From: Oopsacas minuta
Lineage: Eukaryota > Animalia > Porifera
NCBI GenBank assembly: GCA_024704765.1
Contig: JAKMXF010000345.1
Coordinates: 139,239-203,238, forward strand
Direction of reading: 5' to 3'
Length of the DNA: 64,000 bases
Shown here one piece after another: positions 15,905 through 63,886 of the stretch (positions are counted from its first letter, which is position 1; the number at the start of each line of letters is the position of its first letter). A program made the position numbers and the translations under genes. The notes under the pieces were generated by a model. It saw only the letters and a program-made list of their open reading frames with translations, made no database searches and was not told the DNA's origin.

Positions 15905-16305
15905 GGAATTTAGCCAACGTTCCTCTTTACCTAATTCGTATATTCATTTTGAATTTAGTATATAGAGATTTTTCATATATTGAGTGAGTTTTACATATTG
16001 TGTTTGTATATATTTCTGATGTATTGATAATCTGGTTTCGCAGGAATTGTCATGTTTTTAATTATTAATTAGGAATTGTTGAGTTTTTGAGTGTCAGTTT
16101 AATAAATTGTTGTTGTTTTGATGGGTTTAATGAGGGAGGAGGTAATTAACTGTTTTCATTGGTTGGCGTCGCATGAGACGAAATTTTTCTGTATTTAGCT
16201 TTTGCAATTTGGTGCCTCATAATCACTTTTTTAGTTCCCGGCTGCCTTATCAGACAGTTGACAAGTTCCTTAAATCTATATACATATACTGATATTAGCT
16301 CAACG

Positions 16306-39000: not shown

Positions 39001-42000
39001 GACATCAGGGTATGATGCTTATGTATTCAAGACGTCATCAGTGCCTTGTATGTGGGCAGCATCTAATGCTATATGTACAGCAGTAGAGAATGCTAGAGAT
39101 CTCAATTATTATTCTGGAGGCACAAGTCATACGTGGGTTCCTTATTATAAAGACAAATTAACTGATAATAGACAGAGCTTACATGAATGGTAAGTTGAAG
39201 TTTGTCGGTCAAATATGTTGGTGCACTTGTTCCAAGCCCTGAATTGGCCAAGCAGTGTTGCTAGGTGATGTGATCCCAAAGTTCATGCCAAGTCCTTGAA
39301 AGTTCATTCCAAGGTTCATAGTTCATACCACAAGTCAAAAGTTCATATCTCCTGCCAAATCTAAAAAACGCGTCCATGATATCACATTACTGTGGCGAAG
39401 TGACCTTATTTATTCAATTAGCCCAGGGGTGAGCATTATTTCTACAAATTTCAGTACCAATTGCATAATCGTTAGAGTTATTATTGGATAGGAATTGTTA
39501 CTTATTTTCTTTCAACTTTGGACCTTACATGATCATAATTTCATGAATAACTACACTTCCCCCACAATCTAACATATTCGATTACAACCTTGTAATTGTA
39601 ATTGGCTTTTGATAATATAATGTGTGTGTTTTGTGAAGGTATATGATGGATGAAGTGACGTCATTTTTCAGGCCAGATTCTCCTATCTTCTCAATAGAAG
39701 AAGAGTAAGTAATTTGTGACTTTTAAAATTTGATTATTTCCCCTAATAACTACAGCCAACTCCCGGTTATATCGAAGCTCAAGAGACCGCAATACTTGCT
39801 TCCACATAACCAATGGAATATATGTTACTTTAAAGGTTTGAGACCACATTTGTACAATTTAAGACTTCGATATAAGCGGGTATTTCTATATATCCGTATT
39901 CTATATAACGGGAGATTACTGTATTTATGTTCATATGTATTTTAGTCCAATTGATGACGAAACAACTTTTAAGCGTGCGTTGATATCCCAGCTTAGAGAG
40001 GTATGTGAATTGATAATTATCTTTTTTGGGTGTTATTGTTTATATATTCTCGTTGCCTTTATAGAATATGAGTCATACAGATTTAGAAAATGTTACAAGT
40101 CGTGATGTAAGTACTTACCTTCACATTTAAAAATTTAATTATAATTTCCGCGTTTTTTTTGCGATTTTTTCTGATTTTTTATCGATAAAATTTTGAGTTT
40201 TTATAGTGAAATTTTACATGTTTTTGATCGTTAATTTTTCCACTTTTTATTGTGAATTTTTCTATTTTTAGTTAAGATTACAGTTAGAAGCTCAGTTCAA
40301 TCGTCCACTCAAGAGTTACCTTAGTTTCCTAGATGAACAGATGCTATTCATATTTGGACAAATGAAGAAACCATCTGAAATATTATCTTTCTTATATCTG
40401 GTGGGTTTATGCATAAATTCTGTGAATAACGTAACAGCAAAAATTGCGATTTAATTTCGCTTTTCAATATTTATTTTAGTTGTTTATGATAATACAAGTT
40501 TATTGTAATTTTCTTTAGGGTTCCGAATGGAATGCTTCAAATCTATCTGAACTAAGACAATTAGGGTCAGTTTCTTATATGCTATTTACTACAATCTCCT
40601 CTATATTACACCCAGGTCGTGTCCAGAAAAATTGTCCTGGGTATCAAATTTGGTATGACAGTCCTCTGGTATACCAGGGCCAGCGCCGTACCATAATTTC
40701 AAAGCCGGGGTAAATGTTCCTTTGTCCGCCCCTAGGACGCCCCTTATAGCATGTATGTAATATTGAATAATCCCACTTTATATGCTTCAATTCATTTATA
40801 GGGTTGGTTATATCATCAATATCTCAAGAGAAGTTGATAACTTTTTCCCAGATACTTTCAAGTATTTACCTATCAGGTAAGAACCTTGGATATTGTCAAT
40901 AAATAATATGACGTCACTCAAAATGATTTGCAAATTTGACTACTTTGTAATCTCCCAAACGGCGGGCCTCGGACGTCGAAAATATTTCCCAGTTTGTGGA
41001 GGTTCATTTGTATGGGACTAGGAATTCGGCTTGTTTTTCACTCCGTTTCCAGAAGTTCCCGTTTCCAACCGGCCCCATTTGTGAAGATTACACTGTATCT
41101 AATCATTTATTCATAGAGTATACGATCAAGAGACTTCGGATCTTATGCGACACTGGGAGAGTACTTTCAAATTTATAAGTGAAGCAAGGTTAGTACATTC
41201 AATTCTACATTGTAGTTCATGGAAAATTGTTTATTTATTTTCTAATTTGTGTAGAGATAATAACAGTAAAGTATTGGTACATTGTAAGATGGGAGTAAGC
41301 AGATCTGCATCAACAGTGAGTATTTGTTTGATAATTATAAATACACCTATGCTAGCTGGGGTGAATAAAATAGCAAAATTGTCAGATAGGGAGGTAGTAT
41401 CTGATGATCAATATATGTCCGAAATTGCGACTTCTCAGCCAAAACAGCAACCAAGTATGCTTATAGAAATAGCTCATTGGAATTTCTCCAGGGTCCAAAT
41501 ATCATACATTGCAGTATTTACTTGCTAATGAGACGAATCACAATGATTACTTCTAAATTAATAGATTTTTAACATTTTTGTCATTCATAGGTAATCGCGT
41601 TTCTAATGAAAGAACTCAATATGAGTTTAGAGAGTGGAATAAGCCACGTAAAAGAACGACGTAACTGTATTAAACCGAATAAAGGATTTCTGGAACAATT
41701 GAAAACATATGAAGGCATTTTGAATGCAAGGTAGTGCAGATTAGTAAATCTGACATTTATGTTAACGAATTAAATGGTCGTATTACATAGGGCAATCCTT
41801 ACGTATTGAATTATAATGAAAACTTTCAAAGCTAAATTGATTACTTTGTTAAGTCTTTTTTGCTCAGAAATTTCATGAAAACTTAGAGCAATTTTGAGCA
41901 CATTTTTGTGTGATAACAATGATATTTTTAGAAATAATTCCTATTAATATTTTCATTAGTACAAAATTAACTAAAATGGTGAATATGTTAAGAAATTGAT

Positions 42001-43889
42001 TATTACTATATATGGGCATTTTACGCTTATAAAACAGATTACATCATCTCTATTAACTTCTAATATAGTGTTGTATACACGTTTAGTTTTTTATCAATTT
42101 GAATTTCTATTACTTGATTATTAATACAGTGAAACCTGTGGAAACAGCGAACTTCTTGAAACTGAGTGAAAAATAATTCTTAGTCCCATTCAAATGAACC
42201 TCCACGAACGTGGATAAGGGCAGAAATGGGTAGCATTATTCAGAGGTTGCATTTTATATAAATTCTTGTGATTAGACATAAAACCTTCTGGTCTGCAAAG
42301 ATAGAAAAGAAATCCCATTTACTCCGCTGTCGTTCAGAAACTAGTTTAATACAAGATATCCATTTCCCAAAGCAAGCACCAGAACTCTGTCTATCATATT
42401 CAACTTCAAATTTAACACCAAAATCATGGCGTAATGAATTGAATACTGAACAAATCTCAGCGAATGATTCTCAAACTACAAGTGATATTGAGCCTTTTGA
42501 TTCTTCTGATACAGGATCTCCTGTGAGTTCTTCTCCGATGTCACAGCCTGATGAAACTCTGTTACAGGTAAATTATAATCCTCATTGTCAGATCCTGGGA
42601 ATTCAAATTTTCCCCTGCATAAGACTTAAAGTCTCGGCGGGAGTATGACCACTTGTAATAATTTCCTGAGATTTTATTTGCCAAATATCTAAATTAAAAT
42701 TTGCAAATATTTCTTGTAAATTACCGAGATAATCCAGGGATCCTTGGGAGGGATGCAAGGATCAAAATGACAATTTTTGACTAATATTTATTCGTAGATG
42801 ATGTCAGAAGGTAGTGATCTTCCAATAACTCAACTCTCCTCTGATATTGCACAAGCTAAACGTGAAAAAATGGAAAGAGAAAATCAACAAAAAACAAAAC
42901 ATTTAACCATATGCGACATAAATGTATCAGAAAAATCTGCATTCCAACCGGTTGCTAAGCGACAGAAAATATCCACCAGTTTGAAAACTAGGCCAAAATC
43001 AGCTGTTTCAAGTTCATCATACAAATCACAATCTTTGGACGGAAACTTTGCGTATTACCTTGAATTGCCTAGATCCATGCCAAATTCACCTGGCTTGAAA
43101 AAGGCCAATCGAATGTCAATATCACCAACCAAATTATCTCCACTTTTAGAAACGAGCTATACAAATACGTCAATTTTACGACCGCATTCTGCGCCGAAAA
43201 GTAACAGTGAAAACCGACCGACAAGCGAAGTTCTAGAACGAACACTATCAACGCCAGACTTATGCGAATTAAGTGGAACGAAACGTCACACAATTACCGA
43301 ATCGATTTCTCCAAATGATTCCGTACAGTTGCATGTACAAAACTTTGAATCACTTTCCCTACAGAATATACGTACAGCTTGCGACTCGTTGAGCTCATCA
43401 CCACCATTAAACGATTACTCAATTGACCTACATGGATCTTCTTGGAGTAAAGAAAGACATTCAGTCTCAATTGAGAATTTAAGTTCACATTCCTCGCATC
43501 AGCTGGGTAGCAACAAATCACGGATTGGTTTGAATAAAAACTCAAACAATGCGAACCATCTTTCGCCATCATTAAGAAACACTGATAACGAACGGCTAAT
43601 TGAAAATGTACAAGCATATATACAGAGACTAGAATCAATGGAAAAAGACCGAGATGAAGTACTAGCAAGTTCGCCACGTAAAATGCCTTGTACATTGCCT
43701 GAACAGGAAAATACAGTTAGTGCTATGAAGAAAATATTTGAGAAGGATGATGACATTGAAAAATTCGAGGATCAAATAGAATTTCTGAATTCAAACTCGA
43801 ATAATAATAATAATAATAATAATACTACCATGGACACAGAATTTATGATTTTTCCGTATATTATGGAGAGCCAAGAAACAGATTGTTAG
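33070..43889 (+). CDS. SSH: Protein phosphatase Slingshot homolog (dual-specificity cofilin phosphatase), multi-exon
   Basis: Exon 1 MSLLTIERPTSAASS (33070-33129); exon 2 33511-33643; GDLQHHL (37618); EESCLLG; FRPDSP; GQMKKPSEI; LGSEWNASNL; EVDNFFP; VLVHCKMGVSRSAS; IKPNKGFLEQLKTYEGILNA; Ser-rich tail to 43889. Confidence 0.93.
33695..33915. mobile_element. MITE family D with AAACTTGTTTCAGCTCCAC termini
   Basis: AAACTTGTTTCAGCTCCAC at ~33695 and GTGGAGCTGAAACAAGTTT at ~33897-33915; the same end occurs at ~6475 and ~7255. Confidence 0.7.
36036..36193. mobile_element. MITE with TACAGTAGAACTCGG/CCGAGTTCTACTGTA termini (TA target-site duplication pattern)
   Basis: 15-bp inverted termini including flanking TA, directly visible. 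Confidence 0.75.
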
Positions 43890-44788: not shown

Positions 44789-47700
44789 TTAGATTGTAGT
44801 TGAACAGTACTCATTGACTAGAGCGAAGCAAGATAGGAAATGATTCTAAAATAGAGAATAAAAGTAAATGGAATGTAATCCTATTAATATAATAATCCCT
44901 CGATTCAAGGTTTTACGAATATCAATACGTCGGGGATATCTCAGTTATTGATAAATAATGCTATATTTGTTTTAAATATCGAAAATATTGGGAAAAATGA
45001 GAATTATCGGAAATTGTTTTTCGATATTTCCGACATTTTTCGAAAATCCCGATACCGATAATTCCGATAAATATCCGAATTTCCGATAGTTTTGATATTC
45101 TTCCAACTCGATATATGTATATCGATGTAATTCCTTCCTAGACTTACCAAGGTAGGCACGAAGTGCATCCTCTCGCTCCTCAATCCTTTGATAACATGGA
45201 AGATATCAATAGCATCTTTATTGTTAATATGCTCAATAATCTTGTAGGTAGTCAGCAATACTCCTGTACGTCCTATACCATCACTACAATGGACTATTAT
45301 GGGTAAATTCGGGTTTTCTTGCCTGTACTTTTGCATAGTCTGTATCAGTAAAAGAATACTTTTAATATCTGTAGCTTCGCCTTTGTCGTTCCAAGCTAGT
45401 AATATTAACTGCGTAACGGAATGCGACATACCATCTTCATTGTTTTCTATGATCAAACTTTGCTTTATTATAGTAGAGACTTTCTCAGAGTGCGTATTCC
45501 TGACTGTAAATGGGTTGATATGAGTGCATTCATCTGTTTTGCCCCAATAAGAGGCACGTTTTGACCTTTTCCCTTCGATTTCACCCTTTTCCTTTCTCGT
45601 AGTTAGCATTATAACTAGAGACGAGGCTGTTTGTGTTACCATTTGAAGGAAATCGGCCATTGTGTGTGTATTTGGGTGCACAGTCGCAATAAAATTTAAA
45701 TTCGAAATGTATGACGCGTTTATATAATCGTTCATGTCGGTCAATGGAATCAAGACAACGCGGTTATCGTCGTATGGAACGATTTTAGCGACAGGGTTCT
45801 TTTTCGCATTTTGAGGATCACTTCCTGTTTCGTATGGTAACTCAATTATTTCATCAGTTTGGAAGTTGAGCTCGTTAAATTGTTGGTAGAGAATAGATTC
45901 ATAACCTTCGATATCCGTTTCTAGATATTGCTTGTATGTAGATGTGAATTCGCTTGCTTCGATTGACGTATCTTGGAAGAGAAGCTCTGAAACTGAAAGA
46001 TAAATGAATTTATATTGGCGAAAGGTTTGCACCATTTGTGGACGACTTTCCCTCATCTCGTAGACAACTTTGTATATGCTTATAGGTTGTGATTTTTCAA
46101 TAGCAGATAGGATATTGAATAGTGTTATGAAAGTCCCAGTTCGACCCACCCCCGCGGAACAGTGCACTAGTATATGGGATTTGGTATCTTTGACGTCATT
46201 ATGGACTTTTTGTGTGAAATTTAGGAGTTCATCGTAGACGATTGGTACATCCTGATCAGGCCAGGCTGTGAAATGGAAATGCTTGATTTTCTGTGTTTTC
46301 TCCCCGTTGCTGGCTTGGAAAATCCTCACAATATATCCGAGGAATGTTTCCGCGTGGATTTGCTGGATTTTGAATTTCCCAAACTGCTCAGGTGTCCGAC
46401 TATCTAACGGAAAATACATCTCACATTTCTTTCGATTGCCTTCAATAATATTCGAAAGCATAACAATATTCGTGACGTCACTCTCCATGATCATTCGCCA
46501 GAAATCTACAACAGTTTCCTCCTTAGGCGCCTGAGCTGCAATGAATTTCTCCGTACAATACAACCCTGGTATATAGCTAGCGTTTATGTACGTAGTCATG
46601 TAATCACCGTCTAACGGTGTAAGTATAACACGTGATTTGTCATATGGGAAAATCATTTTGTATTTATTCTTTTGCTTGTTGTGGGCCATTACCGCGTTTT
46701 CGCAGGGATATTTTAATGTTACACCACCCAAACTCTTAAATTCTTCTTCAAATAAACCAGTGTTTTTTATGAGTTTTGTTAGATGCTGTTTGTATAGGTC
46801 TAGTTTAATCGGTTCCATTTTGGGGTCTACGAATTCTGTGATATCTTCATAGTACAATTTCATTTTGGGCTGCGATTTACTTGGCAAGTTGATGTAGTTT
46901 GAAGAGTATATTGATTCTGGGATTTCTATGTTCGAATCTTCCAAAGTTTCCATCAATTCTTTTTCAGTTATGTCAATTCCTGGAATCACGTCTTTCAAAA
47001 ATTCATAGTTCTTTCTATCATTTTTCTGTTTACACTGCCTTACGCTTGGAGGGGGAATTGCTGCAGTTAGACTGTTAGAGTATTTGATTTTGCTTAAGTA
47101 TTGATATTCCTTGGGTTTTCTCTTGCGTATACAGATTATAATAATAATAAATATTATTATTATCATGACTATGATACAGGCTGTGAGAACTACAAAACCA
47201 ACAACTGCTCCGATTGCGATTACTGTTATTGAAATTCCTTCTGGAGTTAGCGTACTATTTGTTTGTATCATTGATACTGATACACTTTCTGTTGTACCTA
47301 CAGATTTTGAAGCAGATATGTATACAGTAGACTCCAGCTTAATAGAGCGACCGGTTGGTCACTTTGCCAGATACAGAACCATACAAATAGTGTTAAATTA
47401 CTCCTATTAATTGGATCAATATGTCCTGGTCCCGATGTGACCTTATTAAGCGAAGTATACTGTAATTATTTATGTGGAACTATCATTTGATTTGGAATTT
47501 TGAAGCGAAAATGCCTTAGAAATTTTACGAAATTTTTTGTTGTTGTTAATGAAGAGGATTATCTAGCTACCTGTTGTTGCTGGTATAGTAGTCTGGGCTC
47601 CCGTAGTAGTTGTAGTGTATATTTGTTCAGCTCCACCGCTCGTGACATGACATCTATACGATCCATTCTTATTAATTGCCAATTCGCTGATTCCATTTTC

Positions 47701-48686
47701 GCTAGTATCGGCATTCATAGAGTTCCATACATTACTTCTTGTAGCTTTATACTCCCATGAGATTGTTCTATTACTCTGAGGATATGTATCAGTTCTACAG
47801 GCTAGAATTGTAGGTAATATACTACTGTTAGTGATGGCGTCATTGGTGATGGTTTGATATTGCTCATTTTCTCTGATAGCAAATGCACTACCTACGAACA
47901 AAACTAACTTAAGCTAGAGTCCTAATTAGCTAATTCTAGATTAGTTTTGTGTACTTATTAAGTTATTACAGTATTCAAGATCATCGAATGTTCATGACAT
48001 TACTTACCTGGTTTTCTACAAATGCGGTGTATGTCCATACTACTACTACAAGGGGCAGATCTCCATGCACCATAACCATTAATCCCAATACATCCGTCTG
48101 GATCGTTTATTATAGGCACCTTGGTATATGTTAGTGGATTACCATCTTCCCAATTTGATAATTCATTGTAACTCGAATAATTCAATCCAATCCATGCAAG
48201 TGTACCCAATGAATTTCCAGGATAATTCTTTACAAGATTTTGTAACATTTCATCCTCATTTTCTGAATTTATACTTGTTAGATGTCCTCCTCTTGTAATG
48301 CAATTTTGTCTAGAATTCTCCCACGAAAGATCAAGCTCTGAGATATAAATGAAACAACTATTGTTGTAGAATACATCACAATTAGTTCCAAAATCTAATA
48401 TTCATAAGAAAATCCACATTATTATTAGAAACGGGTATCTCTCCCATTTTATTTAACTTATTTACTCAATCCAATATTGTGGTTAGCGGTTCCCAAACTG
48501 GGCCTATGGAGACTGTGATCAGCATGGGGTTCACAGGATCTGTTAATATTGGTATAGCGGGTCTACAGGTGAAAGGTTTGGGAACCCCTGATGATAGAAT
48601 AATCCCTTACCTATACTTAGTGCAGAACATCTTAACACACAAATAATCTCCAAGATAAATACAAAATGAATCTTACTGAAATACAT
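44789..48686 (-). CDS. Receptor-type tyrosine phosphatase R1: signal peptide - C-type lectin - Ig-like - TM - D1 (active) - D2; 5 exons
   Basis: Exons approx. 48686-48611 (MYFSKIHFVFILEIICVLRCSALSI), 48395-48008 (CTLD), ~47895-47561 (Ig: C...W...YRC), ~47297-45141, 44845-44789 (NHFLSCFALVNEYCSTTI*). D1 has WPDQ, HCSAGVGRTG and QMVQT; D2 has HCSDGIGRTG but WND in place of WPD. Confidence 0.88.
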
Positions 48687-49056
48687 TGTCAATGTTGAAA
48701 ATTCTATCTTTTCTCTCTCAAACAATTTCTTCCATAATTTATACTCTCAAACTCGGATAATTTACATAATTATGACTTCAGAATAATCTGTAGGGATTAT
48801 TTTATTGGGAAGTTTAACAGAATAATTCTGCCCAAATATGGGAAATATCCATTAATGATAACTCTATGAGTAATACAATATCTAATGTATATTAAATAAG
48901 GAAAAATTAGAAATTATGTTTATTTATCCACTTTTAATCATACAGAGTTCATTCTATGGAAAAATGCTGTTACAACACTACAATTATATAATACACGTAT
49001 ACATAATTTGTATATAATAATTCTAGTCACAACAACAATTTGTTGTTTTCTGTAAT

Positions 49057-52000
49057 TTAGTCGGAGTATTTGGTCTTGTAGTATTCTTGAAGGATAGAGT
49101 AACAATATGAGTAATGTATCTAGAAATGAGCCAAAATAATATATAAATCATAACCAAATATTGTCTACAATGAGTTAAGGATTATATTAATTTTCCACTT
49201 TTTTGGGAAAAATTATTGTGGAATTTAACGTATGATTAATTATATAAATTAAACGCAAATTCCTGACCAATTTTGTGTGTTTTAGAATAACTGAGATTCC
49301 ACCTAAAGCAACCGTTCCCAACATTATTCTCTCTTAGGACCCCTATACCAATTTTAACACATTTTGTGACCCTCTCATAGACAGCAATATACATTTTAGA
49401 TCATGTGGACCATGGACCCACCTGTCTTAATTTACTCGAAATATTTAAATTTCTTAAATATGTCTGATTTCAATTTGAGAATAATATTATTCATTTGCCA
49501 TTACATATGTGACTAATCCATGGTCCCAATTGCAGCTTTCTACCTATTCACCAGCACTTTTGTGCTCAAGATACAAGCGAAAATGTCTGTTTTTCGTACA
49601 TCATTATATTCTATCCGATTTCTTAACTAACCATTTATACTCAACTCACCAAAGATGGTACACAGTATTTTCTCTCCATTCTCATCCGCTTTACAACTTC
49701 ATTAACATCAACATTCGCATTTCCTTCTATTTCCTCTATTACCTTCAGTACTGTTGCTAACACAGCACTCTTTCGTATACCATCTGAGCAATGTATTACT
49801 ATAGGGGGCCCTGGCTGTTCATTTTTGTGAGCCAAAATTGTTTCAACCAAATTGACTATGCTTTTGATATCGGATTGATCTTCCCAGCCTATTGATGTTA
49901 TCTGTTTGAACGTATTCTCGCGGTTTTCATTGGCATTATGCAGTATTAATGTATGTATTATCGCATTTTCTGATTTTGTAACTGCGCTAGTTTTTACTAC
50001 AAATTGTTCATACTCCCTCACAGAACCTTGTTGCCCCCAGTACGTAACTCCATTCGAAATATTCCACTCAATCTCGCTCAACTCTTTCTTCGTTGTCAAC
50101 ATTACGACAAGGCTAGCTTCCGTTTGGTAGAGCATTTGTAGGAAATCTGGTAGTGTATTTTGCATTGGATGAATTGTGATGATAAATTCGTTGTTGCAAA
50201 TGTATGACGCGTTTATATAATTGTTTTCGGTCATAAGGACAACTCTATTGTAATCGTATGGTACAATGTTTTCTATGGAATTTTTAGGTTTGTTGTTTGG
50301 TTCATTGGCGATGTGTGTTGCTTGGTGATGACGTAATCTTGAACATTCCGAATTGAGAATTTTAAATTGTTTTCGTATTTCTGTTTCTGACATTTGTCCG
50401 AAAGTGGCGGATTTAGAAAGATTTTCTTGAGTTATAACTTGTAAATTTTGGTATGGTGATTCGTTTATGAGCTCTTTGGCTGTATGTTCTACCTCTGCCA
50501 TTGCAACATAGTCATCTGATGGTGTATAATCGGCATCTGTCATTTGATTCATGACGTCAGAAATATTCAAGTATTCTGCTTTATTTGATGGCTGTTCAAT
50601 TTCTGTATCTGTTCGCATTTGTGATTCTTTCTCATATTTTATACGATTTTCCTCCTCATTTATGCGTTTGAAATGAACAGCCCTGTTTCTCCTTTTACAC
50701 AATATTACGATAAATATGCTTATTATGGTCGCTATTGAACATAACAACACGAGTATTAGTATTAAAGTAATCAATCCGCCGAATAATGCTTGACTTCTTT
50801 TAGAATTGAGAAATAGATAAGGAGTTGCATCGTTTGAAGTGGAGGTAAATTCTTTTGTGCTGATACTGGGTGTACCTGTATCAAAAACGAAAAGTGATGG
50901 GTTTTACAAAAGTTCAAATTTTAGCTTTACTTTTGGACCGAATCATTTGTGATTTTTTGTTATAACTGCAAGAGCTAATTATACGAATAGTTCCTTACAG
51001 CTTCTTAGTTCTTATCTCATCAACTGAATTGACGGGAATATCTCGTATTTGGCTTACCTGTAGTGGTTGGTATGAGTACTGTAGTGTATATTTGTTCAGC
51101 TCCACCACTTTTGACATGACATCTATATGATCCATACGCAGTAACTGTCAATTCGCTGATTCCATTTTCCCTAGTATCAGCATTCATAGAGTTCCATACA
51201 TTACTTCCTGTAGCTTTATACTCCCACGAGGCTTTTCTATTACTCTGAGGATATGTATCAGTTCTACAGGCTAGAATTGTAGGTAATATACTACTGATGG
51301 TGGTGGTGGTGTCATTGGTGATAGTTTGATATTGTCCATTCTCTCTGATAGCAAATGCACTACCTACGAACAAAAATACCTTAAGCTAGAGTCCTAATTA
51401 GCTAATTCTAGATTAGTTTTGTGTACATATTAAGCTATTACAGTATTCGAGATCATCGAATGTTCATGACATTCCTTACCTGGTTTTCTACAAATGCGGT
51501 GTCTGTCTATATCACTACTACAGGAGGTGGAAACCCATGTACCATGACCATTAATCGCAATACAACCTTCTTTAGCGTTTATTATAAGCATCTTAGTATA
51601 TGTTAGTGGATTACCATCTTCCCAATTTGATGATTCATTGTAACTCGAATAATTCAATCCAATCCATACAGATGTACCCAATGAATTTTCAGGATAATTC
51701 GCTACAAGATTTTGTAACATTTCATTCTCATTTTCTGAATTTATACTTGTTAGATGTCCTCCTCTTGTAATGCAATTTTGTCTAGAATTCTCCCACGGAA
51801 GATCAAGCTCTGAGATGTAAATGAAACAGCTTTTGTTGTAGAATACATCACAATCAGTTCCAAAATCTAAAAACAAACAAAGATATATACATTGCAAGAA
51901 TTTCAAATTTCTCCAAAATCTAGTAACCTATCACTAATCTAAGTAATCTCTGATAAAGCAAATTGTCCAAGTTTACACACTATAATAGCGATAAACACAA

Positions 52001-52286
52001 ACTTGTTCAATATTAACGAATACAGTGGATGCTGGTTATAACAATTTCATCCGGAGTACAATACATGTTCTTATACCGGAACAATACAATAGTACATGAT
52101 AACAGTTCTAGAGGGAATCCGTTGTTCTTATAACCGGCGCGGCACCCACTGTATAGTTGCTTACATACTGTAATTGTAGTTGTTTGAAGAATACTTAAAT
52201 TATAACATACCAAGAGATTGAGAGGAAATTACATCACAAAATATCCCCAAGACAACAATAAGATTGATTCCATGGCAAAACAACAT
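49057..52286 (-). CDS. Receptor pseudophosphatase R2: signal peptide - C-type lectin - Ig-like - TM - Tyr-motif linker - single D2-like domain; 5 exons
   Basis: Exons approx. 52286-52211 (MLFCHGINLIVVLGIFCDVISSQSL; 76 nt, as in R1), ~51865-51478, ~51370-51058, ~50877-49648, 49119-49057 (IHYSYCYSILQEYYKTKYSD*). The only PTP domain has HCSDGIRKS (P-loop Arg replaced by Lys) and WED. Confidence 0.8.
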
Positions 52287-53434: not shown

Positions 53435-55165
53435 ATGAGGATCAAGACAATCTTTGCTACGCTTTCCCTACTTGGCTTATCCATTGCAATTTCTCCACAA
53501 TTTTGGTGGGATTTGTCAAATTGTTTATTCATTTTCTTCAATCCGTATACAATTCTTGAGAAACATTTCCCCTACCTAAGAGACGAAGTATTACGTTTAA
53601 ACAGCTCTATATCAAGACTTCCAAGCTGGCGACTGCTATTACTATTCAGTACTGTTGGATATTTGTTGCATGCCCTGTCCATCTTTCTATTTGAAACCAA
53701 ACTAACTTTGAAGGAACGATTTATCCATACTTTCTTTTACTGCGTACGAAATGCACCGTTTATCAAGACGTATATCAAAACGGAAATGGATAAGGCCAAA
53801 ATTCTGGTTGAGGGTTCTTTCGCAAGTGTGAATTGTCCACGGAAGAATCACGCCTTACCTAAGAATGGTCTCTCAAGGGATGAAATACTTACGGAATGTG
53901 AAGCACACGCTAAAATGGGGGACGGTAATTGGAGAAGAGGCCAAGTTTCAGGAGCCGTGTACATTTACAACCCTGATCACAAGCAAGTCCTTGAAGATGT
54001 ATATTCAAAATTCGCTGAGACAAACCCCTTACATCCTGATGTATTTCCTGGTGTACGTAAAATGGATGCAGAAATCGTTTCAATGTGTTTGAACATGTAC
54101 CATGGTTTTAATGGTGAGTGTGGGGCCACGACATCAGGGGGAACTGAGAGCATTTTAATGGCTATGAAAGCGTATCGAGAAATCGGTTACTCAAAAGGCA
54201 TCAAGTATCCTGAAATTATTGTTGCTATTTCAGCTCATTCAGCTTTCATGAAAGCAGCCAATTACTTCGGTATGAGAGCCATCAGAGTGAAAGTGGATAA
54301 GAATTTCGCACTCGATGTCAAAGCGTTTGAAAAGGCGATTAATAGCAATACAGTAGTTCTAGTTGCATCCGCACCCAGTTACCCTCATGGGATAATCGAT
54401 GCTGTGGGAGATGTAGCTAAATTAGGCCTCAAATATAACGTGGGGGTACACGTGGACTGTTGTTTAGGTGGATTCTTAATACCTTTCATGGAGGAAGCTG
54501 GGTATCCTATTCCGATGGTCGATTTCAGAGTGGATGGGGTTACTTCGATATCATGTGATACTCACAAATATGGTTACGGACCAAAAGGCTGTTCAGTGAT
54601 TATGTACAAGGATGACAAGCTTAGAATGAATCAGTATTTCATAGATACAGATTGGTCAGGTGGAATTTATGCTTCTCCTGCAATTGCTGGCAGTAGGAGT
54701 GGTGCAGTTCTTGCTTGTACATGGGCAGCAATGATGCATGTAGGAAGAGAAGGATACGTTGAGAGAACTAGGGAAATTATCGCTGTGAGAGAAGAAACTG
54801 AAAAGCAAGTTCGGAATATACCTGAATTGATTGTCTATGGAAATCCCACTGTTTCTGTACTTGCAATCGGAAGTAAGACCCTTGATATATTCAACATAGC
54901 TGATCTTCTAACTAAAATGGGCTGGCATCTTAATATTCTCCAATTTCCTGGAGCTTTTCATATTTGCTTCACTGCTATGCATATTGGCAAGAACATTCCA
55001 GAACGTTTTATCACTGATCTTAAGAAGTGTGTTGAGGCAGCGCAAGATACAAATGGCAGTTTAAACGGGGCAGGTTCTATATATGGAACCACGATGCAGA
55101 TACCAGATAGATCACTGGTTGGTGAAGTAACCACTACTTACCTGAATTCGCTCTACAAAGTATAA
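53435..55165 (+). CDS. SGPL1: Sphingosine-1-phosphate lyase (PLP-dependent), intronless
   Basis: 576-aa uninterrupted ORF: N-terminal hydrophobic anchor, GQVSGAVY, TNPLHPDVFPGVRKMDAE, TSGGTESILMA, HVDCCLGGF, SISCDTHKYG (PLP Lys), GSRSG. Confidence 0.95.
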   Translation: MRIKTIFATLSLLGLSIAISPQFWWDLSNCLFIFFNPYTILEKHFPYLRDEVLRLNSSISRLPSWRLLLLFSTVGYLLHALSIFLFETKLTLKERFIHTFFYCVRNAPFIKTYIKTEMDKAKILVEGSFASVNCPRKNHALPKNGLSRDEILTECEAHAKMGDGNWRRGQVSGAVYIYNPDHKQVLEDVYSKFAETNPLHPDVFPGVRKMDAEIVSMCLNMYHGFNGECGATTSGGTESILMAMKAYREIGYSKGIKYPEIIVAISAHSAFMKAANYFGMRAIRVKVDKNFALDVKAFEKAINSNTVVLVASAPSYPHGIIDAVGDVAKLGLKYNVGVHVDCCLGGFLIPFMEEAGYPIPMVDFRVDGVTSISCDTHKYGYGPKGCSVIMYKDDKLRMNQYFIDTDWSGGIYASPAIAGSRSGAVLACTWAAMMHVGREGYVERTREIIAVREETEKQVRNIPELIVYGNPTVSVLAIGSKTLDIFNIADLLTKMGWHLNILQFPGAFHICFTAMHIGKNIPERFITDLKKCVEAAQDTNGSLNGAGSIYGTTMQIPDRSLVGEVTTTYLNSLYKV

Positions 55166-55415: not shown

Positions 55416-58400
55416 TTAAATTCTTTGGCAGTATTCATTCATCAGCGTATAGCAAGCTAAGAAGTGGTTCTACAAGAATATGATGGTAATCAAAGTTACA
55501 AATATAAAGGGTTGTAGTATACGTACTTAAGTTCGGCCCAAGATTCTTACAAGCTTCAAATTAAATAAGTTTAACGCAGGTTGGTTTACGCACAATTAAG
55601 GTAAGCACCTTATATACTATTTAGTAATTTAACCTTCAGGATATAGTATGTGTATCGCTATTCCATTGGAGTTATAAATTCATGTTACACTTCTATGATA
55701 AATTATTAAAAACTTAAACTTACCAGAGTGGTGACACTATTCATCCTCTCATTCCTCAGTTTCTTCACGATATGAAATATATCAATGAAACCCTTCTCTC
55801 TGCTATTTTTAATTGCCTTATAAACAGTATACAACACCCCACTCATTCCAGCTCCATCTTGACAGTGTATTATGATCGGGGCTAATGGAAACTGTTGATG
55901 AAACTCGAGCATTGCTTGTAGTACAAGTACATTCTTCTTCAAATCAGGTTCTCCCTTATCATTCCAACAATTGGCAATTATTTGAGTGAATATTTTGTTA
56001 GATTCCTCTTCCATATGTTGCAATGATATTTTGTTACGAATATAATGCAATTTCTCACTCTCTTCACAAGTGAGTTTGAATGAGTCGGTTTGGAAAGATT
56101 CGCTGAACTTTGGCCAATAGACAACTCTTTGAGATTTGTTCTGTTCAATCAACTGGAGCTCCCATTTAGAACACAACATTATTACCAAACTAGGTTCCAT
56201 TTGGTAAATGAGTTGATAGAAATCTCGCAAAGTTTCTGCCAGAGGGTGAATTGTAAGAATGATTTCACCATTATCTAGGCTACTAGCGTTTATATAATCT
56301 CCTTCCCAGTATGGTGAGTAGAGAACGACTCTATTACTATCAGATGGTAGAATATCTTTGATTGGATTTTTGCCTGAATTACACTCCTTAATTGCATCTA
56401 CACAAACTGGATCAAACGCCTTTTCGCATTGGTAGTTGAGTTCACTAAATTGTTGAAAAAATACAGATACATATCCAGTATATTCAGATTGCATGTACAG
56501 ATCGAATGTGTCGGCAAATTCTCTGGTTGGGGTGGATGTACTCCCAAGTAATATCTCAAGGACGGATAGATAAATGAATTTATACTGTGCAAATGTTTGG
56601 ACCATTTGAGGACGATGTTCTCTCATTTGATGGACGATACTATATATACTGATGGGTTTCGTCTGGACAATTGCAACGAAAAGATTGTACAGCGTTAAGA
56701 ACGTACCAGAACGACCTACGCCTGCAGAGCAATGCACTAATACAGGTGCTTTTGTTTTGATTAATCCTTCATGAACTTTGGAAACAAACAGCAACAACTC
56801 ATCATAAAGCGTTGGAACATCATGATCAGGCCATGCGGTGAAATGAAAATGTTTTAATTGTTTGATCTTTCCCATCGATTGAACACTCATCATCCTTATG
56901 GTATAGCCAGTCTTCACTTCTTCATTATCGACCATGATTTCATATGGACCGAATATTACTTTCTTACCAATTTTCAATGGGAAATATGCTTCACATTTTC
57001 TTCGTCCTGATTCAACTAAATTTGTTACCATTACAATATTTGCTATGTTATTCTCAATAATCATTTGCCAAAAATCCTGTAGTGTATTTTCCTTTGGTCC
57101 TTGTGCAGCAATGAAACTTTCTTTAACATAGAATCCAGGTATCTTACTTGCATTTACGTAATCCGTATTGATATTTCCACTCTGAGGGGTTAGAATGACC
57201 CGAGATTTATCATATGGATATATTAGCTTGAAACGATTCTTCACTTTGTTTTCCTCAATTGATGCATGTTTACAAGAGTATCTGTGTGTTTTCCCTCCTA
57301 AACTTTCGTATTCTTCAAGAAGTGCGCCTTCTTTTTTCCAAATAGTGTCCATGCGCTGTTTGAATACATCTAATGGTATGGGAGCCATTCTTGGATCTAA
57401 TACTTCTGTAATATCTTCATATGCTATTTCTATACTTTGTTGGTATACATTTTCTTCTGGTTTGGATGTAATTTCTGATTGTGTAAAATTTGTTTCTAAA
57501 GTGCCCTTTTCTTCCATTATACTGTATCCATGATTGGAGACACTTTTCGGATAATCAAAGTTATCTCTACTTTCATTTTCTACATTTGGTGATTTAATAG
57601 GACTACCCCTGGGTTCATTGTTCAAATGTTGTTTTGGATAAGATGAACGTTTTCCTTTTACTATTTTGAATACAAAAAAGATTAGGAGAATAGTGATGAT
57701 AATTATGCACGCTAATATGACGATTAGGATAATTGGAATTGCGATTGTTGCAGGGGATATACTAGATCCTTGTTGCGGGGTAACTCTCAAATACACTAGA
57801 GCTGTGGTATATTCTACCCCTTTTGATGTATTTCTAACCAATGAATAATTTCCTCCATTATCCTCCGATACCATAGGAATAATGTATGTAGGTGATATCA
57901 TATCTCCCAAGTTTGTTTTCCAAATACACACAGGAATATTACAAGTGAATTGGACATTCTTTGTACCCACTGGTACTTCTATTTCTTTTGGTGATGGAAA
58001 TAATTCATTACTAATATCACTTGTGGTAAAGTTGTACCCTTCATAACTGATTGTTACTTCTACTGTATCTGTAAATATAGGATAGATAATTTGATGATAT
58101 AATATGTACTATCAATATACCTTTGATTGCTAGCTGGAGACTTCCCAGTAAGGTGATTGGACTCATTCTATAGAACGAAGTCATTCCGTGTATTCCTGTT
58201 CCCACATTAGTGAATACTGCACTCAACAACACTGGATTTGGGTACTCAATACTGTATTCCTTAGTTTCACCATCATTTACAGAGTCTGTTGTCCAACGTA
58301 TTTTAGTATCTGGAATTTCTGAGTTTGAATAGTAGAGTATATCATTAATAGAACCGACAGTATAGTTCACTTGTAACGAAATGTTAAAGTTGGTTATTTC

Positions 58401-61400
58401 TTCTAGAAAAAAACATGACTGTCAATATGGATCGCATATTATAATAATCGCTGTGTAGAATGCGGAGATATTACTATTTAAATCCCTATTACCTATTCCA
58501 TCAGTTGTTTCAGTAATATTGATCTGTATGGCACAGACTTCTTGCCCATCCCAGTTGGTAATATATAACTTATACACCCCTTTGTTCTGTGATGTGAAAG
58601 TTGAAATTGCTACAGTATTGAATGAATAGCTTCCATCAGGTAGCATCCATCTACCTTCAATGTTATCTGGAATAGAAATGTTCTTGATACCAATAGGAAT
58701 TTCTATATTATTCATGACAGGATAAACTGATGAAAATTTTTCAATAATGAGATCACCATATTGGAGGATTATTTGTGGTACTAGAGGAAATAATGTGAGG
58801 ATAATTGGATAACATATTACTCCAAGTCGTAACACTACCTCTAGAATTAATTTTGTTTTTTGATATTTCATCTCCATCTCTCGAACAATTGATGCTATAG
58901 TAACCGATTGACTTATCACCAATCATTTTGTATATGTTGAATGGATTGGGAAGAGTAACACTACCCTCTACAGACCATAATAACGCAGACAGGCTACCAC
59001 TATCCATGGGATCGCATAGTAGTAATACATTCTGTCTATCTACTCCTACTGTATAGTTGTAGGTAGTTCCTGATATAGCAACTAGATGAGAGATTTGAAT
59101 GATACATGAGTTAGGATAATCAAAGAGCACAAAATTTGCTAACCTGTTGTTAAGGCTGGATCATACAACCCAATCGCATAAGATAATGAATTGATTTGAC
59201 ACTGATAATATCCTTGTTTGGTAATATCAACTGCTAACCAACTTAATCCAGTTTCTGTACTACTATATGTTGCTGTAAGTACTTCACTATCTGATAGATC
59301 TGAGTTTTCTGAAAAATTCCATAAGATATTATTACTCTGTTCTCCTCCACATGCTAAGGTACGTGAAGTGAACAAGAAAGTGTTTGAGTTAAGTAGTTGG
59401 AAGTCAAATCTTTCGTTAATGAGTTCTCCAAATCTACCAACTGAGAGTAGATAGGAATTAGAAATGTGAAAGAATCTTAGAATATATATATTCATATTTA
59501 CAAACCTATTGTTACAGTACTAGTTGAAGCTCTTTTGCATACAAAAGTGTTTATAGTATCCTCACAGTTCACAGTTTCCCAACTAACACCTCCAGTTGTG
59601 TTAATCTCAATACAATCACCATCATTAGATGGGGGATTTGTCCAATTCGCATAGCTAAATGTTGCACCATCAGTCCAGGTATAAGTTCCCTCTTCACTCC
59701 TATCATTCAATCCTATCCAATAATTATTACTCATTATGATAGTGTATAAGTAGTTGTTCTCTCTCTCTGTAGTAATACTAGTCAAGTCACCACCCCATAC
59801 AGCACAACTAGATTGAGCATCTAACCAGTTGATTCTTGTACTTACATCAAATATTCGGTAACATGATCCTTCATAGATGAGATCACATACACTGGGTGTT
59901 GCTATAGGTAAACAAAACACAATTATTGCTCCAATTCTATATACAAACTTTAGATACACGATTTATGGTTACTCTCGGGTACCCAATGTATTCTTATACC
60001 GTACATATTGTTTAAAAGGTCTTATTAGCTTGTATTATGCAGAAAATGTAGAAATATTGTGTTACCTGGTTTTGTGCAGAAGTGACAATCTATTGGAGTA
60101 TTACAAAAAAGATTTATCCATCCATCTGATATAGGGCCAGTACCTCCGGCTTTATATCTGAATCGAACACAATCAAAATTAGCTACATCTCTAGGGTATG
60201 TATATTCTAATGTTCCGAAGTTCCTATATGTGCTTGTGCTGCCATCTACCCACACAAATGCACTACCATTAGTACCAGCATCTACAAGTATATCATTCAG
60301 ACCAATATAGCATCTAAAGTATGTTTGTATATCTGTTATACTATAATATAATAAATCGTCTTTTACTTCTGACGTGATAGTAGCAAGATTTCCTCCCCAT
60401 AAGATACAGCTGAGTTGTGCAGTTAGCCAGTCTATAGAAGGTGAATTGGTGAAATATCCAAATGTTGTTCCACCGAATGTAAATTCTTCTTCTGGATCCA
60501 TAACTAAGATAGATTATGTATTTGTATAAAAAATCGATACATTCTGAGGTAAGTATATTCCACGTGTATATATTCAAGAGCCTTTTCATGTATGTAAATT
60601 TTACGATATAATTCATAGAATGTCTGTTTTAAGAATATTTACCTGTAAGAGCAGGTGATGATGTAATTTTAATCTGCATAGCAATCACCTCTTCTTGATT
60701 CCAGTTGTCATCAGTATAGAATGTGTACATTCCTTCATCAGCTTGCATGAATTCTGAGATAACTAAAGTGGGACTTGTAGTATCCACACCTTCTGGATCA
60801 GTCCATTTTCCCTCTAAGTTGATGGAGAGAGAAACATCTTTTGTTTCTAATGCGATATCAATCAGATTCATTGATGGATATGTTAAGGAGAAGCTTTCAA
60901 CCAGAAACTGACCGTAGTGAACGGACATTTCGGGGACTAAAAGCAACAGTTTGTATATATAAAGATAGCTTTTTTGAAATGATATGTAAATTTACCTGTA
61001 ATTGAAAGATTGATAGTAACAATGGTGGTCCCTTCTCTCATACAGCTAAATGCTGTAGACTCTGTTGGTAATGTAGCACTCTCAGTATTTACGTGAATTG
61101 GGTTATTATACGTACTATCCCACATAACTGTACTCAAACTACCAATCTCAGTAGGATTACACAACAGTAATACAGTGTCTCTGTCCACCCCTACTATATA
61201 TATGTATGTTTGCCCTTCAACCGCAACTAGATAGATAAGTTGGTGTTATCAAGACTGTAAAATATATTCAAATATATCAAAGTAATCTACTTACTTGTTG
61301 TTAAGGATGGATCATACAATCCGATCGTATAAGTTTCTGAATTGGCTTGGCACTGATAATAACCTTGTTTGGTAATATCAACTGCTAACCAACTCCATCC

Positions 61401-63886
61401 AGCTTCCATATTCTCATAGGTTGCTATTTCTGGTAGATAAGATGATAGATCTGAATTCTCTGAAAATATCCATGTAATGGCTATATTCTCTTCTCCTCCA
61501 TAAGCTAATGTATGTGGGGTGAACAAGAATGTGTTTTCACTAATTGTTTCAAAGTCTAATCTTCCATTACTAAGTTGTCCAAATCCTCCAGCTAAAACAT
61601 GATATATATTAATATATTGTATCCAATAGCTACTATTTCTATGGCATTGTAGCATTCCTATTATACTGACCTGTTGTTACAGAAGAAGGTCTTTTACATA
61701 GAAAAGCATTTCTGGTCATGACACAGTCTACAGTCCTCCAACTACCCTCTCCACCTCGTATTATGTCAACACAATCTTCATTACTAATAGATGGTTCATT
61801 CCCTGTCCAGTTTGTATGACTATATACTGAACCATCAATCCAGGTATATGTTCCATCGTTATTATCTCTATCATTCAATCCTATCCAGCAATTACTCACT
61901 GTAGCAGGAGGGATAATAGTGTATAAGTAATTATTCTCTCTCTCTGTAGTAATACTAGTCAAGTCACCACCCCATACAGCACAACTAGATTGAGCATCTA
62001 ACCAGTTGATTCCAGTACTCACTTCATATAATCGATAGCAAGATCCATCATAGATCAGATCACATCCTTGTGAGTTACCTATTCAAATTAAGTAACTAAA
62101 TTGAATAAAAGTATTTTCAACAGTTTAGTAAATTGAAAGGACAAAATACATTTTATTCTATTTTCCCAGTTTAGTATTTTCCTTTCTTATTTGTATTATT
62201 TAGTGTAACCATTGTCCAGGATTTTATACATCAATACAGGATTCTCGAGATTATTATTTTGAATAGTCGGATGTTAAAATTATGTGATTCGAGATCAACT
62301 CCCTGAAGATGTCAAATTTACCAAATGTACTATTGCTACACATAACACATAACACATCATTAGTCATTTTAGAACCTGCATGCAGCTAATATATAATCTT
62401 GCTATCACATAGATATGTCTTTAACTTTTCTGAAAAATCTACATAAATTCTTAAACTGGCTATCAATATTAGCGGCAGCTTTGCTTTGTAATGTTAAATG
62501 AGGTCTCACACTATTTCTATTACAAAATTAAATATCCAGTTATATTTTTATATATGCTTGTCAAAAATGATCAATTTAGTGTCCAGGATCTTGTCCAGGG
62601 TATTTAAAATTATGTCCAGGAATATTCCAGGAATATTAATGCTTAAATATACAGGATTTAGAACTAAACATGCTGGTCAACGTAAAATTTATTTTCAAGT
62701 TTTGGACCTTTTTTTAATCTACGATCACTTACCTGGTTTGGTGCAGAAGTAACAATCTCTATTAAAGGTACAATTTCTATTAATCCAACCGCTTGATAAT
62801 ACACCTCCGAATTTGTATCTGAATCTAACACAGTCATTACCATCATTTCCTGAGGGACTTGATACTTTAGGAAATGAACCGAAGTTAGTATAAGTATTGG
62901 CACTACCATCAACCCATACAAATGCACTAGCATCAGTACCAGCGTGCACATCTCTATCATTTAGACCTATATAACATGAAACATAGCTTATTTCAGGTTC
63001 TGGTGCACTATAAAACAATAAGCTGTCTTCTACTGCTGAATTGATTGTAGCAAGATTTCCTCCCCAGTTATTGCATTCTACTTCAGCATCTGGCCAATTT
63101 ATTGGGCTCACTATGAAGTATCCAAATGTTGTATCATTATATATTAGAGAAATATTAGGAGTTTGTGCTTAAGAAAGAGATAAAGAATATATTATATAAT
63201 TTATACGTTAGTATATTGACTAGTTAATTCTATACAAAATTATTTAACAGAACCGTTTTACAAAGTCCTTGTACATATATATTCTAATATTTACGTATAA
63301 TTGTAGGTTATGTGTCGGACAAATATTACAATTATTACATCGTTAAATATATTCCATGTGGTCGTCCAAACTTTAATGGGATTATTAGAACCTGTATTCC
63401 GATATTGTAGGGGACCTTTAGCCAAGCGTATCGTAACAGGTAGCAAATATGGATACATTGAATTGAACTCCGAGAATTGTGGATTATTATGGTGTCCAAT
63501 GCTATTTTATCGGGCTGTAGCTTGGCACGTATAAACAGTATAACCCTATGAATATTGGTTTGGTGGAACCTGACCAACCTGGCCGTTTTTATAGCAATGA
63601 GTATATGCTAGGGTCAACTATGATATTTACCAAATCCTGTTTATTAACGACCCCCAAGTGCTGTAGCTGGGCAAAGGTCGTTATAACAGACGCCCGCTAC
63701 AAGCTATCGTATAAAAGTTATGATAATAAGGTTCGACTGTTTATGAAAAGTACGCACATGTATATACATATTTGCTATTAGCTAAGGCAGATATTTAAAC
63801 ATAATAAGATAGTTACCTGTTATAATGCCGGAAAGTGAAGCACTTATCGTGAACAATAGAACAACTTGATAAAAGTTAGTTCCCAT
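55416..63886 (-). CDS. Receptor-type tyrosine phosphatase R3: signal peptide - duplicated (2 CTLD + 3 Ig-like/other) cassette - further Ig-like domains - TM - D1 (active) - D2 (inactive); about 14 exons
   Basis: Signal exon 63886-63817 (MGTNFYQVVLLFTISASLSGIIT); CTLD exons near 63168-62733, 62078-61668, 60500-60065 and 59905-59505; large exon with TM, D1 (WPDH, HCSAGVGRSG) and D2 (HCQDGAGMS); last exon 55469-55416 (NHFLACYTLMNEYCQRI*), homologous to the last exon of R1. Confidence 0.85.

Follow-up and report, generated by a model that had tools for sequence, protein, structure and literature searches.

Concerted evolution of the ectodomains of a tandem receptor phosphatase pair in four glass-sponge lineages

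A window of 64,000 nucleotides (nt) from the glass sponge Oopsacas minuta (the whole stretch of DNA analysed here, G000:C345:139239-203238 of a 61.5-Mb assembly) carries two adjacent minus-strand genes, R1 (44789-48686) and R2 (49057-52286), encoding receptors in which a C-type lectin-like domain (CTLD) and an immunoglobulin (Ig)-like domain are joined through a membrane span to protein tyrosine phosphatase (PTP) domains. R1 has a first, active-type PTP domain (D1) followed by a second (D2), whereas R2 has a single D2-type domain and no D1. New here is the observation that this lectin phosphatase pair undergoes concerted evolution across species, in four glass-sponge lineages; searches of the searchable paper library turned up no description of this receptor system. 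We favour, with a probability of roughly 55%, the reading that R1 and R2 form a long-standing, conserved pair of tandemly arranged glass-sponge lectin-plus-Ig receptors with matched outer faces and separate inner parts, in which the R2 signal would oppose or modulate that of R1. Comparisons were made with three ENA sources, ERZ25072730 (L015), ERZ25069837 (Vazella-like; L035) and ERZ20067936 (L036), and with the Vazella pourtalesii transcriptome in EukProt.

Both genes consist of five exons separated by GT-AG introns (Table 1). Exon lengths in R2 and R1, respectively, are 76/76, 387/387, 306/321, 1226/2150 and 63/57 nt; the genes therefore have a common five-exon plan, as an earlier, sequence-only reading of this DNA had proposed, and the difference in exon 4 amounts to 924 nt (308 codons). 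The R2 stop codon and the R1 start codon are 370 nt apart, and the gap has AATAAA and TATAAA motifs. The R2 coding sequence of 2058 nt specifies a product that is 100% identical to NCBI O. minuta protein P0001 (685 amino acids), which is named 'Receptor-type tyrosine-protein phosphatase alpha' and was the only full-length sequence used, the exons otherwise being analysed singly. An alternative last exon of R2, with an acceptor near 49587 and the ending TFSLVS*, was ruled out by the annotated protein and by a Vazella transcript, which place the true exon at 49119-49057. The R1 product has 996 amino acids. Y_phosphatase is detected by Pfam twice in R1 and once in R2. Since KNKY, WPD, HCSAGVGRTG and QTFRQY are all present in R1-D1, R1 looks like a complete and catalytically competent receptor tyrosine phosphatase, with D2 following D1. 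In R2, one gap-free exon runs from the membrane span to the single D2-like domain, with neither D1 nor an intron between them and with WED and HCSDGIRKS in place, exactly as first described.

Direct reading of the CTLD exon sequence showed that the EPN/QPD and WND sugar- and calcium-binding motifs are absent. The label 'Ig' given to the exon-3 domain holds in part: an AlphaFold model of P0001, computed with a 25-row alignment, makes this domain all-beta at moderate confidence (beta strands at a predicted local distance difference test score, pLDDT, of 56-71), but the Pfam evidence is weak (Ig_3, expect value E 0.008 in R1; no match in R2). In the same model the PTP domain is confident (pLDDT 80-96), the CTLD is of low confidence, a membrane helix is predicted at residues 284-322, and tail residues 322-417 have no secondary structure and are predicted to be disordered (pLDDT 24-41).

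The ectodomains had been called nearly the same. At the DNA level this is the case for the CTLD and Ig exons, R1 47611-48398 and R2 51080-51870 being 91.3% identical over 791 nt; in amino acids, however, identity is ~82% for the CTLD and ~83% for the Ig exon, and the signal exons, stalks, membrane spans and cytoplasmic parts cannot be aligned as DNA. The tract of high identity begins at the exon-2 acceptor, ends ~40 nt before the exon-3 donor and includes intron 2. Because this intron is homogenised together with the exons (Jukes-Cantor distances of 0.054 and 0.052), the similarity reflects DNA-level gene conversion, beyond any constraint on the protein. The other lineages gave the same picture. 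In L015 the same exon 2-intron 2-exon 3 block is 91.6% identical between the two orthologues over 886 nt; L035 has two recent copies of R2, and each of them matches R1 over 787 nt at 90.3-90.6% identity. The L036 gene that occupies the position of R2 is 81-87% identical to its neighbouring R1 copy, R1a, in the ectodomain and ~66% in the cytoplasmic part. Between species (O. minuta and L015), by comparison, the CTLD exons are ~69% identical and the cytoplasmic exons 66-72%. A DNA tree of the CTLD exon groups the sequences by species (supports 100/99, 100/100, 100/99 and 87/96), whereas a tree of the PTP domains groups them by gene, across species. We conclude that the exon 2-intron 2-exon 3 block has been copied repeatedly between R1 and R2 by interlocus gene conversion, in four lineages and over a time longer than that of synonymous saturation. 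Apart from decayed copies, no other place in the genome has the CTLD-Ig type of this pair.

Within the block, the ratio of nonsynonymous to synonymous change (omega, dN/dS) between R1 and R2 is 1.07 for the CTLD exon in O. minuta, 1.09 in L015, 0.79 in L035 and 0.48 in L036, or 0.78 when the four pairs are summed. Values of 0.44 and 0.69 were obtained for the Ig exon, and omega over the whole O. minuta tract (0.71) is not different from 1. There are 11 CTLD columns at which three or more of the four pairs show a difference between the partners (permutation p < 0.0002). These figures do not demonstrate positive selection on the CTLD, given an omega of 0.48-1.09 and recurrent columns that rate heterogeneity among sites may explain. 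Judged by their sequences, the two lectin faces are alike yet not identical.

The single PTP domain of R2 is 40% identical to R1-D2 and 26% to R1-D1. It falls inside the D2 clade of PTP trees (supports 96/91 and 98/93), and its best solved-structure matches are D2 of PTPsigma, LAR and RPTPalpha (tandem PTPσ, E 5e-44, with the best stretch in D2; D2 of PTPσ and LAR, E 1e-42 to 1e-44), the match to PTPRN2 (2qep) being much weaker (E 8e-17). R2 does not belong to the PTPRN/IA-2 class (R8), since its domain places among sponge D2 domains and not with the IA-2-like D1-type domains. From the build of a classical tandem receptor-type PTP (RPTP) it has the signal peptide, the ectodomain, the single membrane span and D2, and lacks D1. 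In the numbering of alignment A1, which covers the R2 tail and domain from three species, the domain retains Cys329 and Asp299 (of WED). Its losses comprise the catalytic Arg, replaced by Lys, the Tyr of the phosphotyrosine loop (KN-S-I for KNRY) and both Q-loop Gln (VPSL / IHYSYCY). With the Arg, the Tyr and both Gln missing, the domain is by its sequence a D2-type pseudophosphatase. The catalytic P-loop position varies among the R2 orthologues (Arg, Lys, Lys), Arg being kept in Vazella and also in L035. A change from Arg to Lys was considered as a mark of D1-less genes and ruled out, as many intact D1+D2 genes have Lys in D2 and the Vazella and L035 orthologues of R2 keep Arg. Most D2 domains of intact D1+D2 receptor phosphatases on contigs C345, C312, C17 and C111 have Lys at this position, and that of a third receptor gene in the window, R3, has Met; an inactive D2 therefore seems to be the ancestral state throughout the sponge family.

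R2 had been judged not to be decayed, and the comparative data agree. Orthologues were found in three other glass-sponge sources. Those of O. minuta, L015, L035 and the V. pourtalesii transcripts form a well-supported clade, the R1 orthologues form a separate clade with identical species order, and orthologues of both partners occur in one Vazella transcriptome set. The Vazella R2 transcript (P0002 in EukProt, with two Trinity isoforms) is 50% identical to R2 over tail and domain and has the same last exon, and the same D1-less build is encoded in assemblies L015 and L035. Synonymous sites have reached saturation in the comparison of O. minuta with L015 (proportion of synonymous differences, pS, 0.66-0.80); R2-D2 has a dN of 0.29 and an omega of at most 0.18, indicating purifying selection, compared with dN values of 0.18 for R1-D2, 0.14 for R1-D1 and 0.12 for a neighbouring decarboxylase-family gene. 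Amino-acid identity of R2 between the same two species is 59% in D2 and 37% in the tail. The window contains zero N; therefore D1 was not removed by an assembly gap, an explanation that the sequence-only reading had named as fatal to its proposal. The gene order R3-decarboxylase gene-R2-R1 is retained in L015 and L036. These results support R2 as an intact, conserved gene under selection, with an orthologue transcribed in Vazella. In L035 (954-7780), R2 is a tandem duplicate, R2a and R2b being 94-95% identical over ~4.5 kb, and an orphan CTLD exon lies between the copies at 4304-4678.

How D1 may have been lost is illustrated by the gene at R2's syntenic position in L036 (5707-7914), which keeps both PTP domains and is collinear with R1 at 39% identity. 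Its D1 is dead by sequence: KNKY reads KNKG, seven residues are deleted, WPD reads WTS and the P-loop is HCSNGIGPTG, with Pro for Arg. Its motifs SYENV and GYVKM align with NYEFL and NYINL of R1; since they do, and since R1 orthologues keep YxN, the R2 tail is the ancestral juxtamembrane region. Approximately unbiased (AU) tests gave p 0.50 for placement of this gene with the R2 clade and 0.43 with the R1 clade, and its orthology with R2 rests on synteny together with the common YxxM position. This gene may represent an intermediate stage on the way from an active RPTP to the D1-less R2. The gene structures indicate that R2 derives from an R1-like gene and that D1 was lost in-frame inside the large exon. 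L036 also has two active, adjacent R1 copies, R1a and R1b (9984-12063 and 14796-16877), with cytoplasmic DNA that is 86% alike and divergent CTLDs. Because these copies reverse the R2/R1 pattern, the modules on either side of the membrane span appear to be exchanged or kept independently.

The pair belongs to a large family, with at least 123 PTP-domain matches in the genome. Among them is a D1-less 'core' family with a membrane span, a tyrosine tail and a single D2 whose P-loop reads HC(E/D)DGI(S/A/T)KT. The AU test disfavours the idea that all D1-less genes arose once (p 0.024), R2 and the HCEDGISKT core family forming separate clades. The sequence-only reading had suggested looking for D1-less partners beside other RPTPs, and a survey of the clusters on C111, C312, C345 and C17 (those on C321, C99, C67, C16, C222 and C66 lay outside it) found further ectodomain-matched pairs on C345 and C17. 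In these D1-less and D1+D2 pairs the ectodomain DNA is in common and the match stops before the membrane span. Over 1463 nt, the membrane-proximal ectodomain DNA of R3 (C345:197219-198680) shares 88% identity with the corresponding part of a D1-less gene that lies at a distance of 30 kb (C345:228168-229808; the gene spans G000:C345:228168-231158), and ectodomain DNA identities of 86.7% (C345:210260-211968 and 213088-214790) and 98.4% (C17:45513-45830 and 29889-30206) were found in two other pairs. Because several pairs show such matches, ectodomain exchange across cytoplasmic types is a trait of the family. Selected pairing would account for this, and so would a family that is generally prone to conversion. 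The decayed copies of the R2 5' half (G000:C111:387628-389641, L032; C345:1837-3319; C345:13909-15389) are 82-87% identical to R2 and comprise the upstream flank, the signal exon, the CTLD exon (2 stops) and the Ig exon (4 stops), without the PTP exon; D1-less core genes lie immediately upstream of them.

The tyrosine motifs EYLNI, DYVAM and PYQNL, noted earlier as matches to YxN and YxxM docking patterns, are all present in R2. The tail is ~17% invariant in the three-species alignment A1, yet Tyr68 and Asn70 (EYLNIS), Asp88-Tyr89 and Met92 (DYVAM), and Tyr108 and Asn110 (PYQNL) are all invariant. Candidate readers exist in the genome: SH2 matches number at least 56, and a p85-binding domain occurs in two p110 genes, so that class IA phosphoinositide 3-kinase (PI3K) is present.

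Paired receptors are encoded by linked genes that undergo gene conversion; their lectin or Ig binding domains closely resemble each other, and their intracellular parts diverge (PMC13358205). As far as genes can tell, these hallmarks are supported for R1 and R2: the two are tightly linked, have similar binding domains that are homogenised by gene conversion, and differ in their intracellular parts. The proposal that they act as paired receptors thus stands in its linkage, its conversion-kept ectodomain and its distinct cytoplasmic modules, but not in its use of tyrosine motifs, which fail to set R2 apart from R1. In the mechanism we propose, the ligands of R1 and R2 are probably identical or closely related. 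At the site of contact, R1 would supply phosphatase activity and dephosphorylate locally; R2 would keep phosphorylated YxN and YxxM sites, because no eraser is built into the same chain, and could recruit SH2 proteins of the Grb2 and PI3K-p85 types while offering its D2 as a scaffold. The R2 signal would then oppose or modulate that of R1. More tentatively, and with the odds against it, the pair may be an independent, ancient glass-sponge paired-receptor system that pre-dates the split of the four hexactinellid lineages. It would combine an active RPTP with a dead or D1-less, SH2-docking twin, carry a conversion-matched lectin-Ig sensor with fast turnover at recurrent surface positions, and give opposite-sign readouts of one ligand class in self/non-self or microbe recognition, the L036 gene being a surviving intermediate.

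Several observations weigh against pairing with opposed outputs. The partner CTLDs differ at 18-20% of residues, with an omega of about 1 in two species; given this divergence and the range of omega (0.48-1.09), ligand sharing is uncertain. Every R1 orthologue has the invariant juxtamembrane motif x-Y-(I/A/V)-N-(L/I/V); docking motifs are therefore not exclusive to R2, whose lineage is distinguished by YxxM alone. Each of the three R2 motifs can also be read as a YxxΦ sorting or endocytic signal. The R2 tail, checked for immunoreceptor tyrosine-based activation (ITAM), inhibitory (ITIM) and hemITAM patterns, has no ITAM and no consistent ITIM, the spacing and the residue at -2 being variable; as the membrane span is moreover without a charged residue, the ITIM/ITAM wiring of vertebrates is absent. 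A search of the genome for the p85 inter-SH2 (iSH2) family gave no match, its target being a coiled coil that introns may split. Transcript evidence comes from the Vazella orthologues, the O. minuta genes themselves being known from annotation alone, and gene conversion between tandem paralogues can occur without functional coupling.

The last point leads to a different account, in which R1 and R2 are not functionally paired but are independent members of a fast-evolving family whose ectodomain likeness is a neutral by-product of tandem conversion. It would explain why ectodomain DNA is 80-98% alike among many family members in the clusters on C111, C312, C345 and C17, why omega over the tract does not differ from 1, and why the tract ends where homology ends, as expected of homology-limited conversion. 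We nevertheless consider it rather improbable: the match has persisted in four of four lineages, for time enough to saturate synonymous sites, and the CTLD-Ig type is confined to these two genes and the decayed copies. In addition, the ectodomain of the dead-D1 gene of L036 matches that of R1a, whereas R1a and R1b, which are equally adjacent, match in cytoplasmic DNA and not in the CTLD. Far less credible still is the notion of R2 as a pseudogene in decay, or as an artefact of assembly or annotation in which D1 went missing. An ectodomain omega near 1 and the lost P-loop Arg would fit such a view; against it stand a window free of N, five open exons with GT-AG introns, the same architecture in the independent assemblies L015 and L035 and in Vazella transcripts, and the low omega of D2, while Lys for Arg is also common in D2 of intact D1+D2 genes.

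Alternatively, R2 could be a regulatory decoy or dominant-negative form that competes for ligand or putatively pairs with R1, its D2 binding substrates of R1 or R1-D1 and its tyrosines serving as R1 substrates or sorting signals. No part of R2 is better conserved between O. minuta and L015 than D2, Cys and the Asp of W-x-D are invariant in R2 orthologues, and known D2 and pseudophosphatase domains recruit or sequester substrates (PTPRK-D2 with Afadin; PTPRU). Moreover, D1 of the L036 gene is dead and undeleted, so that loss of activity, not gain of motifs, is the common theme, and the fit of the R2 motifs to YxxΦ agrees with a sorting role. On the other hand, two motifs have an invariant Asn at +2 and the third an invariant Met at +3, a specificity beyond what YxxΦ needs, and variation of the P-loop Arg argues against conserved phosphate binding in the pocket. 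We regard a decoy as unlikely, though it deserves more weight than the accounts of the preceding paragraph, and prefer the tandem pair with matched outer faces and separate inner parts.

Vertebrate paired receptors kept alike by conversion include Siglec-5/14, Siglec-11/16 and PILRα/β, besides KIR and the C-type-lectin natural killer cell receptors (PMC13358205). As in these systems, R1 and R2 are closely linked, have similar CTLD+Ig binding domains that are maintained by conversion and show raised amino-acid divergence in the binding domain, and differ in their cytoplasmic modules, one of which is tied to tyrosine-phosphatase activity. Unlike them, the 'inhibitory-type' partner R1 carries its own phosphatase and not a phosphatase-recruiting ITIM, and R2, with neither a charged span nor an ITAM adaptor, has its own YxN/YxxM tail and a pseudophosphatase domain. 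The sponge genes are not homologous to the vertebrate families, and the likeness is a genomic one.

R1 has the full plan of tandem RPTPs such as RPTPα/ε, LAR/PTPσ and CD45 (ectodomain, span, active-type D1, D2), and the R2 domain is of their D2 type, whereas R2 is without D1, the defining catalytic domain. RPTPα reportedly has a Grb2-binding pYxN site at Tyr789 (YANF), a finding attributed to den Hertog et al. in 1994. Compared to RPTPα/ε, R1 and R2 have a CTLD+Ig ectodomain, and their YxN sites are juxtamembrane, not in a C-terminal tail. Tails of the DAP10/CD28 YxNM type are short and disordered and combine YxN (Grb2) with YxxM (PI3K p85) specificity, and DAP10 serves the C-type-lectin receptor NKG2D. 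The R2 tail, as predicted from its sequence, resembles them in being short and disordered and in combining YxN with YxxM; it differs in that the motifs lie on separate tyrosines of the receptor chain itself. Among pseudophosphatases, PTPRU is a receptor with a dead D1 (bioRxiv 10.1101/805119; PMC7320164), and the D2 of PTPRK recruits Afadin (PMC9640194). Like PTPRU and PTPRN/IA-2, R2 has a PTP fold under selection despite catalytic losses, with a likely role as scaffold or competitor, and the L036 gene at R2's position shares the dead D1 plus D2 build of PTPRU. In contrast to PTPRN/IA-2, where the single dead domain is D1-derived, the R2 domain is D2-derived; in contrast to PTPRU, D1 of R2 is deleted, not merely inactivated, and R2 is linked to a matched partner of the active type.

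Immune arms races in vertebrates are seen as the source of paired receptors in which the sensors are matched and the signalling modules opposed. If the preferred reading of R1 and R2 is true, the signature in a syncytial glass sponge would mean that the design originated much earlier, or evolves more readily, than has been assumed, and that it can arise from a receptor phosphatase by deleting or killing D1. The pair provides a testable entry into phosphotyrosine signalling and recognition in Hexactinellida, a little-known field, and active D1+D2, dead D1+D2 and D1-less genes form a natural series for the function of D2 alone.

Table 1. Positions of R1, R2 and the neighbouring decarboxylase-family gene in the window
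Feature	Position	Strand	Description
R2 exon 1	52211-52286	-	Start codon and signal peptide; 76 nt, ends in phase 1; fits the P0001 N-terminus
R2 exon 2	51480-51866	-	C-type lectin-like domain; 387 nt, phase 1-1; Pfam Lectin_C, E 2.9e-15; within the conversion tract
R2 intron 2	51364-51479	-	Homogenised with R1 intron 2; 6 differences in 116 nt
R2 exon 3	51058-51363	-	Ig-like all-beta domain and Thr-rich stalk; 306 nt, phase 1-1
R2 exon 4	49650-50875	-	1226 nt; stalk, membrane span, tyrosine tail, single D2-type PTP domain; without D1, without intron
R2 membrane span	50697-50771	-	Within exon 4; hydrophobic span
R2 tyrosine tail, disordered	50412-50696	-	Within exon 4
R2 motif EYLNI (YxN)	50562-50576	-	Tyr and Asn at +2 invariant in three orthologues (A1)
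R2 motif DYVAM (YxxM)	50499-50513	-	Asp, Tyr and Met invariant in three orthologues (A1); specific to the R2 lineage
R2 motif PYQNL (YxN)	50442-50456	-	Tyr and Asn at +2 invariant in three orthologues (A1)
R2 D2-type PTP domain	49650-50294	-	Within exon 4
R2 WED	49878-49886	-	Asp of W-x-D kept
R2 P-loop HCSDGIRKS	49767-49793	-	Cys kept; Lys at the catalytic Arg position
R2 exon 5	49057-49119	-	63 nt; IHYSYCYSILQEYYKTKYSD and stop; last helix of the PTP fold; same exon in Vazella transcript P0002
R1 exon 1	48611-48686	-	Start codon and signal peptide; 76 nt
R1 exon 2	48008-48394	-	C-type lectin-like domain (Pfam Lectin_C); 387 nt; DNA 91% identical to R2 exon 2
R1 exon 3	47571-47891	-	Ig-like domain and stalk; 321 nt; conversion tract stops at ~47611
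R1 exon 4	45148-47297	-	2150 nt; membrane span, juxtamembrane region, D1, D2
R1 membrane span	47128-47208	-	Within exon 4
R1 juxtamembrane region	within exon 4	-	Tyrosine motifs EYQYL, NYEFL, NYINL, YYEDI
R1 D1	45991-46680	-	KNKY; WPD 46255-46263; HCSAGVGRTG 46135-46164; QTFRQY
R1 D2	45148-45810	-	WND; HCSDGIGRTG 45262-45291
R1 exon 5	44789-44845	-	57 nt; NHFLSCFALVNEYCSTTI and stop
Pyridoxal-dependent decarboxylase-family gene	53435-55165	+	Intronless; 576 amino acids; Pfam Pyridoxal_deC on orthologues; likely sphingosine-1-phosphate lyase

The decarboxylase-family protein is 80% identical to its L015 orthologue, and its gene lies between R3 and R2 in L015 and L036 as well. R3 itself (55706-63111) is a D1+D2 receptor with the D2 P-loop HCQDGAGMSG and a long ectodomain made up of several CTLD and Ig-like exons. 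On the other side of the pair, a plus-strand frame at 41145-41528 has a P-loop of the dual-specificity-phosphatase type, VLVHCKMGVSRSAS, and is followed at 42798-43889 (+) by a Ser-rich frame of 363 amino acids that ends in a poly-Asn run; the two frames probably belong to one multi-exon dual-specificity-phosphatase gene upstream of R1.

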